Assembly (NCBI RefSeq): GCF_000143415.4
Contig: NW_003314320.1
Location: forward strand, 308,586-372,585
Direction of reading: 5' to 3'
Length of the DNA stretch: 64,000 bases
Source: Selaginella moellendorffii
Lineage: Eukaryota > Plantae > Lycopodiophyta
Below are positions 57,188-64,000 of the stretch, piece by piece (position 1 is the stretch's first letter; every line of letters starts with the position of its first letter). The notes under the pieces are model-generated. The model had not been told where the DNA came from, ran no database searches, and saw nothing but the letters and a program-made list of their open reading frames with translations. Both the position numbers and the translations under genes were made by a program.

Positions 57188-57545
57188 TTGCTTTGCTTAA
57201 ACCCTACAAAATCTGCGTTTTGGTGATTTATTTTGGTTATAGTTTGAGGTTATGGAAAGAAAAACTTATTGCTTAAGTTTATCTATAATATTTACCTTTA
57301 GGAATTTCTTTTTTATATATTTTTATCAGCTATAGTTAGTTTAAATATAAATTTAATTAAATTGGTTTATTATACTTAGTTTTATCTGTTTCTCTTTTGC
57401 TATCATAAAAGATTCTATTTTAATAATTCACCAATTGAAATTATTTAATAAGAAGTACAAAGCAAAGCTTCTCAATTTGTATTATACATTTAGAAAACCA
57501 ATCCACACAAAAAACACCAATATTAATACGTACTCCAGTATTATC

Positions 57546-57782
57546 TTAACAGTTAACAACTTGACAATCATCACAAATGCATCTCTTGATATCATTGCAA
57601 GAGCCGCTCTTACAGATCTCACAATTGTTTCCTTCGTTGTTAAAGTGGCACATCTTGCAAAATGTGTGGCAGTGTGATTTAATTGCAGGGTCCTGTGGGC
57701 AGGAATAAAAATTATAACAGTCTTGAGCATTGACTGCCATTGCTAGCACCAAACATAGAATTATAACAATTCCTTTCTTCAT
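57546..57782 (-). CDS. Secreted 12-Cys defensin/macin-like peptide, copy 1
   Basis: Signal peptide MKKGIVIILCLVLAMAVNA; mature QDCYNFYSCPQDPAIKSHCHTFCKMCHFNNEGNNCEICKSGSCNDIKRCICDDCQVVNC; TATAAAA about 45 bp upstream. Confidence 0.85.
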   Translation of the reverse strand: MKKGIVIILCLVLAMAVNAQDCYNFYSCPQDPAIKSHCHTFCKMCHFNNEGNNCEICKSGSCNDIKRCICDDCQVVNC

Positions 57783-58119
57783 CCTGAGACTGCCGGCTAC
57801 TAAGTGATCACATAATTCTTTCATTTTATAGTAAGTAACACGTTAACAAAATATCAAAAATGCTAAGCCAAGCGAGCCGGGAATCTGTAAAGTGGTCTTA
57901 GATTAAAACGGTATTATAAAGCGAGCTTAGATTAAAACGGTATATCGTCCTGCTTTTAGAGAGGAGTAATCTAGATTAATAAAAGGAGTAATTGTCGTCT
58001 TAGCAAGCGTTATGTTCTCTAGAAGGAACAAAACGTCCCTGAAAGACTTACGAGTGAACTGTTTTTATTGATGATGAGTTTACTGGCACGATCGAAGCTC
58101 CGATCGAAGGATGGATCTA

Positions 58120-58383
58120 TCAAGCATAGACGGGGCAATTGGAGCTGCTGCAAGGTCCCTTGCAAGTGCATCGACCATAGGAGCAGCTTCCAGAGTGGCA
58201 CCTCTCGCAGTGCTCGCCGTGGCTCACAAAGTGGCAAAGCTTACAGTAGTCCTTGCACTTGAGGCCACCAAAAAAGCAGGTATACCTCCTGTAACATTTG
58301 GCTTCCTCATGCGCTCCCTCAATCACCATGGCTGCCACAAGAAAGATCGCTGCCAGCATTAAAAGAAACATCACAAACTTCAT
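58120..58383 (-). CDS. Secreted 12-Cys defensin/macin-like peptide, copy 2
   Basis: Signal peptide MKFVMFLLMLAAIFLVAAMVIEG; mature ..KCYRRYTCFFGGLKCKDYCKLCHFVSHGEHCERCHSGSCSYGRCTCKGPCSSSNCPVYA; same Cys spacing as copy 1. Confidence 0.85.
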   Translation of the reverse strand: MKFVMFLLMLAAIFLVAAMVIEGAHEEAKCYRRYTCFFGGLKCKDYCKLCHFVSHGEHCERCHSGSCSYGRCTCKGPCSSSNCPVYA

Positions 58384-58426
58384 TGTCAAGAGCAAGAAAA
58401 CCAAGCAAAGAATGCCTACAAGATGG

Positions 58427-58468
58427 CTCTCTCTCTCTCTCTCTCTCAATATATATATATATATATAT
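58427..58468. repeat. (CT)n(AT)n compound microsatellite upstream of peptide copy 2
   Basis: Direct reading. Confidence 0.9.
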
Positions 58469-60689: not shown

Positions 60690-63600
60690 GGCATTTGGAA
60701 TTTGTTAAATAGTAACCCAAACGAATTGGAAATTATCATCTGAACATTTTGAATGGAATTTATGTATTTAATGGTATTAGTGTGATATGTGGGATAAAGA
60801 TGGTAAATTTTTAAAATTTTCACCATTTCCAATTTTGAGAAGCCATTCAAACCATGATTTATCACTTTTAGCAAGTTGCATATTTGTTTTCAAAGATAAC
60901 TTTCTCAATAATCCCCATAATTTATTCATTCTTATAGAACTTGAAATAATTTATGCCCCATGTCCATGTGGAATGATTGGAAGTGTTTGTTTAAAGTCCC
61001 CGCTAATGACAACAATTATGCCACCAAAAGGTAATAATGTATTTTTTAGGTCTCACAACACTCGATTAACAGTAGTGAATGCATGAGTGTGAACCATATT
61101 TATTTCATCCCATAACAATATGTTAGTAGTTTTGATTTTTATACCTACTTCACTATTAACAGTTATAGTGGAAGTTGATGTTTCATTTATTGGAACAGGA
61201 GGTTTAAAAGTAGTATGTAAAATTCGGCCATTATAAAGTAAAGTACTTGTAATTACTGTCCAAACCATGCTAACAACATTTATTTTTTTCAGTTGTAAAA
61301 TATTTATAAGAATGTTAAGAAGAAATATTTTACCAGTACCACCAGGGCCATCAATGAAAATGTATCGATTATGCTCAGTTGGGTGATCAATAACATTAAG
61401 AATATCATTAAAAATATTTAACTGTTCTTGATTAAATCGAGGAATATTTTGTTCAACATTTTGATATATTTATGTTGAGTTGACAATATTTTCATCATCA
61501 AAATTTTCAAACGTAAAGGTAGATAGTAGTTTTGATTAATTTTGCCATGCATTTTCATTTTAATATTTATATCATGTAAAGCATGTTCATAATGAAAAAT
61601 TAGATTTTTTTGCATGAAATCCTCAAAGAGGAAGTCTTTAAATTTATCCCATAAGAAGTAAGGATCTTTTGGAGTGCAAAAGATACAAAGTAATACAAAT
61701 AATTGTCTTAATTGTGATGGTATTTTAAAAAAGTAAGCATCTTCTAAACATTTTTCCCATTTGGTATCATCAGCTATAATCCCCATTGCATTTGCAACTT
61801 GTTGAAACGTGTCATAATAAATATTGTTAACTGTATTGAGATCTTTGAAAGATGTAACACCTTTTTTATGGAGTAAAATAAGACGTAAATGATATAGTTC
61901 AACATTAGATAGAGACATAGAATATATTCGGGGAATGACATTTCTTGTATGTCAAATTTGCTAGTTATGAGTATGAGCGTTAAATGTATAATATAAAGGG
62001 ATCTCAGGATATGTATATTGTCTAGCATTTGGGTCATTTATATTTAATTCAAACTATTTTGTCAACATCATAGCTCTTTGAAGTGTCATTTGTTCAGAAC
62101 CTTCTATAAAATAAACATTTTGAAATTTTGGAAAATGGATACGGATTATAGGGATCGAACGACTATGCATTTTAAATTTAAAAAGTCTCTATATTGCCTT
62201 TAGAGCAGATTCATAACGTGCTTTATAAAATATTGAAATAAATATTTAATACTTTTTATAGTAGCACAAATTTCAATATTAATATGAGCATTATATTTTT
62301 TACAAAGGTATTTATTATAAGGCACTACCCAACGATTATCAATATAACACCCACTTTTTATATATATACAGCTATTATCAGGTCTATAATAATTTGGATA
62401 TCCATCAACACTAAAAGTAATTTTGTAATTAAATTTTTTCTGATAACCTTTTGAGCAAGTGCCATTTTTCATGCAAAGACTATTAGAATAAAGAGGCTCA
62501 CATGGATCATGTATCATATGAGATGTAATTATTTTAGAAATTTCAAGTTCATTTTGAGGATCAAGCAATTGTGCCGTTATATATTGGTCAATAACATCAT
62601 GGTCTTTAATCTTGTTTTCATAAGATAAAATCCCTAGAAAGTGACAATGTGGAAGGCCTCTTTTTTGAAATTCAATTACATATATAAAAGCAATACAATT
62701 TCCAAAAATATATTTTTTAGTAATATCATTCAAAAATTCTTTAAGCTTGATATGAAATGCTCTAGAAACCAAGTTTGGACGATCCTCAGTGCCTTCATTT
62801 GGATGTAAGTTTTAGCCATTTAGCATTGCATGTAAAAGTAATGAAAAGATTTGGCTTTGAAAAATGAGTAACTATAGCTATTGCATCTTGATAATTTTGT
62901 TGTATTGCTCTAGGGCCACCCCCAAAACTTGAAGGTAAAATAACAATCTTGCCTGGATTTATATTTTCATTAATAGCACAGTTTGCACCATAATCCATAA
63001 GATCAGTATACATTTCAACTTGCAATTGTTTCTAATGAGTGCGATAGTAATTCAAATTATTGCTTTCAACTTTTACATAAGCATCAACTATATATTGTTG
63101 TGTGAGTCTTTCTGCATGTAAAATTAAATTAAAACCAAAGTGTATTGTGTCTCTTATAGATAAATGGTATGCATAATATTGGAGTAATGTAATTCAACAT
63201 CTGGAATTAAAAATATTTTTATGCCAACCTTTGTCACCAAAAGGAAATATTAATGGGTAAACCATTGGATCACAATTATAATCAAGTGTTGAGATACATT
63301 TAGAATTGCTTACAGTTGGATATATACAAATTTCACGACTATGTGGCGGTTCTCCATCATCACTAACAAACACAACAGCATCATTTGTCCGTGGAGCATT
63401 ATAGCGTTGTGGATTAGTTCCTTCAGTTTTTAATAACATGTAAACACCACATATAAGATAACCTAAAAGTGTAGCAAAAAAAATTTCTTCTTGTTCCATT
63501 TCATACATCATTTTGAAAGCTTGAGCATATGGGTTAACATGACAAAGGAGAGCATCAAGATGTTTAAGTAAGTTTGTCTCACGGCTTGAATTAAAAGGGT

Positions 63601-64000
63601 TTTGCTTTCTTATATCTATAGCTTCTAGAGTATCAAGCATATAAAGTTGTCCATAGGTTCAATATTGACCTTCAGAAGGATGTGCTGAAACAATATTATG
63701 ATATATTTGACCATGGATTTTAAAGCAATAAAGACCATGACCTTTTACAATATTAATATTAGAAGACATAGATGCAAAAGCAAGAGCACTATTGTAGTGT
63801 CTAATATTTGTTTTAAAATTAGAGTTCTTATTTTGCTTGTAAAGTGAAAGTAAATCAAATGGTAAAGGTGAAATTGGAGGTAATATAACTTGGTTATTCT
63901 AGCAACACATTGAAGAGTTTTCATCTTTAAAATGCAATGCATTACAAAAAGTACAAACAAATGATAAACTACCAATATTAAAATTTATTATGTTAAAGTC
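60690..64000 (-). mobile_element. Decayed Helitron Rep/Pif1 helicase (frameshifted, 3'-truncated; runs off the right edge)
   Basis: CDPMVYPLIFPFGDKGW, ILPSSFGGGPR..QQNYQDA, LFITFTCN, HUH motif YVIEFQKRGLPHCH, IDNRWVVPYN, FIDGPGGTGK, WDEINM, FGGIIVVISGDFKQTLPII and WLLKIGNG, split across frames. Confidence 0.95.

Follow-up and report, generated by a model that had tools for sequence, protein, structure and literature searches.

Copsin of the mushroom Coprinopsis cinerea is a 57-residue peptide that carries six disulfides and an N-terminal pyroglutamate, displays a plectasin-like helix plus two strands, and binds lipid II (PMC4381204; PMC6461984), a property that it shares with plectasin (PMC6461984; PMC4381204). 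The family to which it belongs is characterised by a 12-Cys pattern within a mature peptide of 57-65 residues (PMC6461984). Binding of lipid II and an effect on Gram-positive bacteria also serve to define this family. In C. cinerea, copsin (CPP1) and CPP2-6 harbour a pro-peptide between the signal peptide and the mature peptide, and in the defensin-like peptides (DLPs) the signal peptide directly abuts the 12-Cys domain (PMC6461984). Among the CS-alpha-beta peptides, those macins that have been characterised contain 8-10 Cys; what defines them may be an additional disulfide, C1-C7, and theromacin also has a C5-C10 bond (Tarr, PMC5116183). In the literature that we searched, copsin-type six-disulfide defensins are described from mushrooms alone, and no paper mentioned copsin-like peptides in plants; Selaginella is an unexpected host. 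Here we describe two neighbouring genes of Selaginella moellendorffii which, on balance, we take to encode copsin-type six-disulfide CS-alpha-beta defensins that are probably antibacterial.

The window, which is the whole 64,000-nucleotide stretch of DNA analysed here, contains two adjoining intronless genes for secreted peptides, called gene 1 and gene 2 in the following (Table 1). Both encoded N-termini look like signal peptides, with a basic n-region and a 12-residue hydrophobic core on the Kyte-Doolittle scale, followed by a cleavage site that obeys the -3/-1 rule. By this rule the gene 1 precursor is predicted to be cleaved after V-N-A, leaving Gln at the N-terminus, and the gene 2 precursor after I-E-G, leaving a residue other than Gln. 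The mature parts are some 60 residues long and have exactly 12 Cys each. Counted from Gln20, the gene 1 product is 59 residues long and acidic (net charge of about -2, pI 5.8), unlike typical cationic defensins; the gene 2 product is basic (net charge of about +6, pI 8.8) and His-rich (4 His). The earlier note on this DNA, which was made from the letters alone, had reported the pair, its signal peptides and its cysteines correctly, and the shared cysteine motif that it wrote out is accurate.

Table 1. Positions of the gene pair and its flanking elements in the window, of the paralogous ORFs on GL377585.1, and scores against the Pfam Defensin_5 profile (gathering cut-off, 25 bits)
Feature	Position	Strand	Description and basis
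Gene 1 coding sequence	57546..57782	-	78 aa and stop, intronless; ORF and translation
Gene 1 predicted signal peptide, aa 1-19	57726..57782	-	hydrophobic core residues 5-16, mean KD 3.44; prediction from the -3/-1 rule
Gene 2 coding sequence	58120..58383	-	87 aa and stop, intronless; ORF and translation
Gene 2 predicted signal peptide, aa 1-23	58315..58383	-	hydrophobic core residues 10-21, mean KD 3.07; prediction from the -3/-1 rule
TATAAAA box	57824..57830	-	48 nt upstream of gene 1 ATG; sequence, putative function
ATTAAA / AATAAT, candidate polyadenylation signals	57440..57449	-	~100 nt past gene 1 stop; sequence, putative function
Two tandem copies of a 27-nt unit	57888..57943	.	89% identical, 105-160 nt upstream of gene 1 ATG; repeat search
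(TA)n(GA)n microsatellite	58425..58468	-	40-85 nt upstream of gene 2 ATG; sequence
AATAAA	58064..58069	-	51 nt past gene 2 stop; sequence, putative function
Paralogue ORF, GL377585.1	L003:4311-4571		86 aa, own stop codon
Paralogue ORF, GL377585.1	L003:10001-10261		86 aa, own stop codon
Paralogue ORF, GL377585.1	L003:18805-19065		86 aa, own stop codon
Defensin_5 score, paralogue	L003:10073-10261		27.8 bits (above cut-off)
Defensin_5 score, gene 1, haplotype-2 allele			24.1 bits
Defensin_5 score, paralogue	L003:4383-4571		23.6 bits
Defensin_5 score, gene 1			23.2 bits, E = 7.3e-5
Defensin_5 score, paralogue	L003:18877-19065		23.0 bits
Defensin_5 score, gene 2			19.1-20.4 bits
Gene 2, haplotype-2 allele	L002:17117-17383		no Defensin_5 match

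BLASTP aligns the two proteins with 37% identity (E = 1e-12). When the columns are sorted by residue, identity is complete for Cys (12/12) and reaches 29% among the 41 columns without Cys (Fisher p = 1e-5); the cysteines have been kept despite diverged loops, as had been noted. The contrast in base composition between the two copies, also pointed out before, is real: gene 1 has a GC content of 0.38 and a GC3 of 0.41, and gene 2 values of 0.51 and 0.62, respectively. The GC3 of gene 2 equals that of an intronless PPR gene nearby, and an AT-rich island surrounds gene 1.

A profile built from the two genes, when searched with HMMER against 1.84e9 representative proteins, gave a single match, EFJ26050.1 (SELMODRAFT_413459; E = 8.9e-12). 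This is a model of 767 residues, of which residues 26-84 match the profile and the first 84 correspond to a paralogue of the window genes. On GL377585.1 we found a triplicated unit, in which each peptide ORF lies upstream of a copy of the gene for HAUS5, an augmin subunit; two HAUS5 GenBank models, including EFJ26050.1, take the peptide ATG as their start and are spliced on to HAUS5. These fusions look like annotation artefacts, since every peptide ORF has a stop codon of its own and, in the copy at L003:10001-10261, AATAAA occurs shortly after the ORF; in this copy, the only one read closely, the ORF is also preceded by a TATAAAT box. The three copies have identical signal peptides and differing mature loops, with dN/dS values of 0.37-0.52. 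Gene 2 is 47-52% identical to them, and is closer to them than to gene 1. N-terminal Gln is predicted for the mature products of gene 1 and of the three GL377585.1 paralogues, and is absent in that of gene 2.

Gene 1 and gene 2 on both haplotypes, together with the three GL377585.1 paralogues, make up a set of 7 sequences from five loci, in which the 12 Cys are invariant, as are K, H, F, G, G-S, R and N. The family thus comprises at least five loci in S. moellendorffii, and the window genes are diverged tandem members of it. Word-based searches that covered 5.8e9 proteins and started from gene 1, from gene 2 or from the 7-sequence alignment retrieved no relative of similar length, and scans of metagenome and prokaryote-genome contigs yielded no relative either. 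A candidate on a metagenome contig (Ga0187773_10017420, L004:142-585) was rejected: this ORF of 147 residues is non-secreted and shares only the 8-residue stretch Y-C-K-S-C-H-F-F, which is a motif coincidence, given that the other cysteines of the family are all missing. Within the window itself, weak tblastn matches away from the gene pair (for example at 692-835) correspond to unrelated Cys/His-rich, zinc-finger-like sequence.

Gene 1 and gene 2 are both intact on the second haplotype, GL377674.1. The alleles of gene 1 differ by 3 synonymous and 3 non-synonymous changes, and those of gene 2 by 4 synonymous and 6 non-synonymous changes and a 3-nt insertion, with allelic dN/dS values of 0.21 and 0.35. 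Between the haplotypes, the two coding sequences show 2.5% and 3.8% substitutions per site, as against 5.2% for the intergenic spacer and 12.5% for the 3' flank. The difference between coding sequence and both non-coding stretches is significant (Fisher p = 8e-5), and that between coding sequence and spacer alone is non-significant (p = 0.20). Gaps between the haplotypes occupy 119 columns in non-coding sequence, as opposed to one in-frame indel in coding sequence. In the haplotype-2 allele of gene 2, a TAC-type triplet adds a Tyr and converts C-x3-C to C-x4-C, and this allele is the only one of the 7 sequences that does not match Defensin_5. Because a canonical fold should not tolerate C-x4-C, gene 2 may be under relaxed constraint; judging from its sequence, the C-x4-C form may be a folding-defective natural allele.

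The cysteine pattern is beyond chance, since neither gene is disrupted on the second haplotype and the same framework recurs in three paralogues, and we consider it very likely that both ORFs are real genes. One could also imagine that they are silent or decaying relics, that is, true descendants of defensin genes that have lost expression. They are indeed unannotated, look-ups of the exact products of four ORF versions returned no transcript-derived protein record, one allele carries an insertion inside CxxxC, and the allelic substitution rate in coding sequence does not fall significantly under that of the spacer. On the other hand, genes for small peptides are routinely overlooked by annotation. 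All copies examined (five loci, of which two were read on both haplotypes; 7 sequences) are intact with 12 Cys, the sole coding indel is in frame, dN/dS lies between 0.21 and 0.52 across comparisons, and core promoter and polyadenylation signals are present. We thus regard decay as very improbable.

When the 7 sequences were compared with Pfam at E <= 10, the sole family matched was Defensin_5 (fungal copsin, PF18251), which recognised 6 of them with E-values ranging from 2.7e-6 to 5.7e-4. One paralogue passes the gathering cut-off of this profile, so that the family as such qualifies through this single member, and both window genes lie just below it. At the same threshold, none of the 7 sequences matched Macin, Gamma-thionin, another defensin family or GASA, and NCBIfam gave no match.

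These results bear on the proposal of the earlier note that the pair has a macin-like framework. In this reading, the peptides would be akin to theromacin, hydramacin and neuromacin, and disulfides particular to macins would reinforce a CS-alpha-beta core. Some similarities exist: C-x3-C-x2-C with an aromatic residue behind it is reminiscent of theromacin, the macins belong to the CS-alpha-beta peptides and have 8-12 Cys (PMC5116183), and theromacin, neuromacin, hydramacin and mytimacins share with the Selaginella peptides the C-x3-C-x2-C helix segment and, as predicted for the latter, extra disulfides beyond the three core bonds. However, the Macin profile was matched by 0/7 sequences at E <= 10, as compared with 6 for Defensin_5. 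Moreover, the characterised macins, with 8-10 Cys, come from animals (PMC5116183) and differ in their N-terminal part, and the C-x3-C-x2-C stretch, which had been likened to the theromacin core, is common across the superfamily and occurs in copsin too. Given the absence of Macin matches, membership of the macins is not supported; the resemblance is one of superfamily, and we judge a macin-type identity to be very improbable.

In their order and core spacing, the cysteines match those of copsin, also in the C-terminal third of the peptide. The Cys spacing of copsin is x6, x7, x3, x2, x6, x2, x4, x7, x1, x3, x2 (PMC4381204), and that of the Selaginella family is x5, x6/x9, x3, x2, x8, x2, x4, x4/x5, x1, x2/x3, x4. 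By eye, and in terms of spacing only, the order of the 12 Cys is the same and the x3, x2, x2, x4 and x1 intervals, which make up C-x3-C-x2-C, C-x2-C-x4-C and C-x-C, are identical, the remaining loops being 1-3 residues apart. The Pfam Defensin_5 model has 39 positions and stops short of the eighth Cys of the Selaginella peptides; the last five Cys thus lie outside the model, and their agreement with copsin is independent of the HMM score. Further points in common are a basic-x-C-H stretch after the helix Cys and, for gene 1 and the GL377585.1 paralogues, the Gln predicted at the mature N-terminus. In addition, the order of signal peptide and 12-Cys domain, with no pro-peptide in between, is that of the C. 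cinerea DLPs. The Selaginella genes differ here from CPP1-6, whose pro-peptide marks the CPP subgroup and not the domain family. Other differences from copsin are that the Selaginella family is hosted by a vascular plant and not by a mushroom, that the post-helix loop is x8 versus x6 and the last loop x4 versus x2, that the loop before C-x-C is shorter, that the gene 1 product is acidic, and that the window genes are sub-threshold for Pfam.

The neighbours of gene 2 and of one paralogue in a protein-language-model space, which we use as leads only, all belong to CS-alpha-beta families (scores of 0.80-0.87) and comprise scorpion toxins, nematode ABF, drosomycin, termicin and plant defensin-like proteins. 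Neither single peptides nor, at E <= 10, the seven-sequence profile retrieved the copsin chain 2MN5 from PDB sequences; the matches obtained, such as those to a hydrogenase, an NMDA receptor and L31, are due to chance. Two AlphaFold2 models calculated from the shallow alignment of 7 sequences had pLDDT values of 47.5 and 50.3, and no helix was predicted. With the low-confidence model of the paralogue, Foldseek ranked 2MN5 second (23 columns, 43% identity, E = 5.9), and with the gene 2 model, likewise of low confidence, it found no match.

The Pfam scores near the cut-off, the failure to retrieve copsin from PDB sequences, the models devoid of helix and the His-rich nature of the gene 2 product (4 His) could all point to a convergent 12-Cys scaffold, which would share only the cysteine pattern with copsin and would adopt another fold or bind metal through Cys/His. 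Such convergence is nonetheless very unlikely in our view: the 12 Cys follow the same order with identical core spacings, several non-Cys residues are common to copsin, and the language-model neighbours are CS-alpha-beta families throughout. Moreover, the oxidising compartment in which secreted peptides fold favours disulfides over metal thiolates. [quoted passage not shown]

Compared with the other cysteine-rich peptides, the family shares the C-x3-C, G-x-C and C-x-C signature with plectasin-type, insect and plant defensins (cis-defensins), which differ in having 6-8 Cys and whose profiles, Gamma-thionin included, are unmatched here. Snakin/GASA peptides are likewise secreted plant peptides with 12 Cys, but they are distinguished by a CC doublet and a different spacing (PMC7168108); the Selaginella peptides have no CC doublet and no GASA match. 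The suggestion that the pair represents an unannotated secreted family of a non-seed plant, bearing the CxxxC / GxC / CxC signature of CS-alpha-beta defensins and falling neither among the 8-Cys plant defensins nor among GASA/snakin, is thus borne out by the profile matches, the number of cysteines and the absence of the doublet.

If the Selaginella peptides are copsin-type defensins, their maturation can be outlined as follows. The signal peptide would direct the precursor into the ER and would then be cleaved, after which the N-terminal Gln of the gene 1 product and of the GL377585.1 paralogues might be converted to pyroglutamate, which copsin also carries. Six disulfides would be formed by the 12 Cys, with the C-x3-C pair of the helix bonded to the C-x-C pair of the strands, and the apoplast would receive a compact, protease-resistant peptide. 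The analogy with copsin and plectasin suggests that the gene 2 product, which is basic, would most likely kill or restrain bacteria by way of the cell-wall precursor lipid II; bound to lipid II, this peptide (+6) would block bacterial wall synthesis, as copsin does. The acidic gene 1 product (-2) would probably have a shifted target or role. Taken separately, the parts of this scheme differ in weight: the case for an antimicrobial function of the peptides is evenly poised, and lipid II is a tentative and rather doubtful candidate for the target.

The acidity of the gene 1 mature peptide (about -2), the variation in the loops of the GL377585.1 copies next to identical signal peptides, and the presence of pollen-coat and defensin-like signalling families among the language-model neighbours would also fit a copsin- or defensin-like fold that is used as a ligand in signalling or recognition, comparable to SCR/SP11 or LURE, and not as an antibiotic. 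We find such a role decidedly unlikely: copsin, the nearest relative that has been characterised, acts as an antibiotic, the products of three of the five loci carry a clear positive charge (+3.7 to +6), and the window shows no sign of a receptor or of a reproductive setting. An antibacterial defensin remains the reading that we prefer.

If confirmed, the presence of copsin-type peptides in Selaginella would extend the known range of a very stable antibiotic scaffold to plants. It would also reveal an overlooked class of antimicrobial peptides in lycophyte immunity, one that escapes annotation and is wrongly fused in GenBank models, and would offer natural variants, including an acidic one, with which recognition of lipid II by this scaffold could be studied. 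Furthermore, it would raise a testable question, namely whether the family was inherited from ancient times or acquired by gene transfer from microbes. It seems unlikely to us that a copsin-type gene reached the Selaginella lineage horizontally, out of a fungus or a bacterium, and then expanded to at least five loci with basic and acidic forms; were this true, a vascular plant would possess a family of antibiotics that targets lipid II and stems from microbes.

The sequences that flank the genes contain several candidate regulatory elements (Table 1). Upstream of gene 1, the position of the TATAAAA box favours the ATG at 57782 over an in-frame upstream ATG at 57824, and the tandem 27-nt units possibly represent the duplication of a cis-regulatory or promoter element. 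Upstream of gene 2, the (TA)n run itself is located 66-85 nt before the ATG and could act as a TATA element. This region aligns poorly between the haplotypes; on GL377674.1, an apparently much longer CT/GA-type tract (L002:17405-17644) is located upstream of the gene 2 allele. The gene calls on scaffold GL377624.1 (GCA_000143415.2) include a PPR protein (PPR-DYW), a RING protein, XTH and HMG-CoA lyase, and the peptide genes sit between the last two, where the annotation is empty. Further along the window, AT-rich ORFs of 148-190 aa are found on the minus strand at 61418-63640, which we take to resemble pieces of a Helitron-type Rep/helicase protein.
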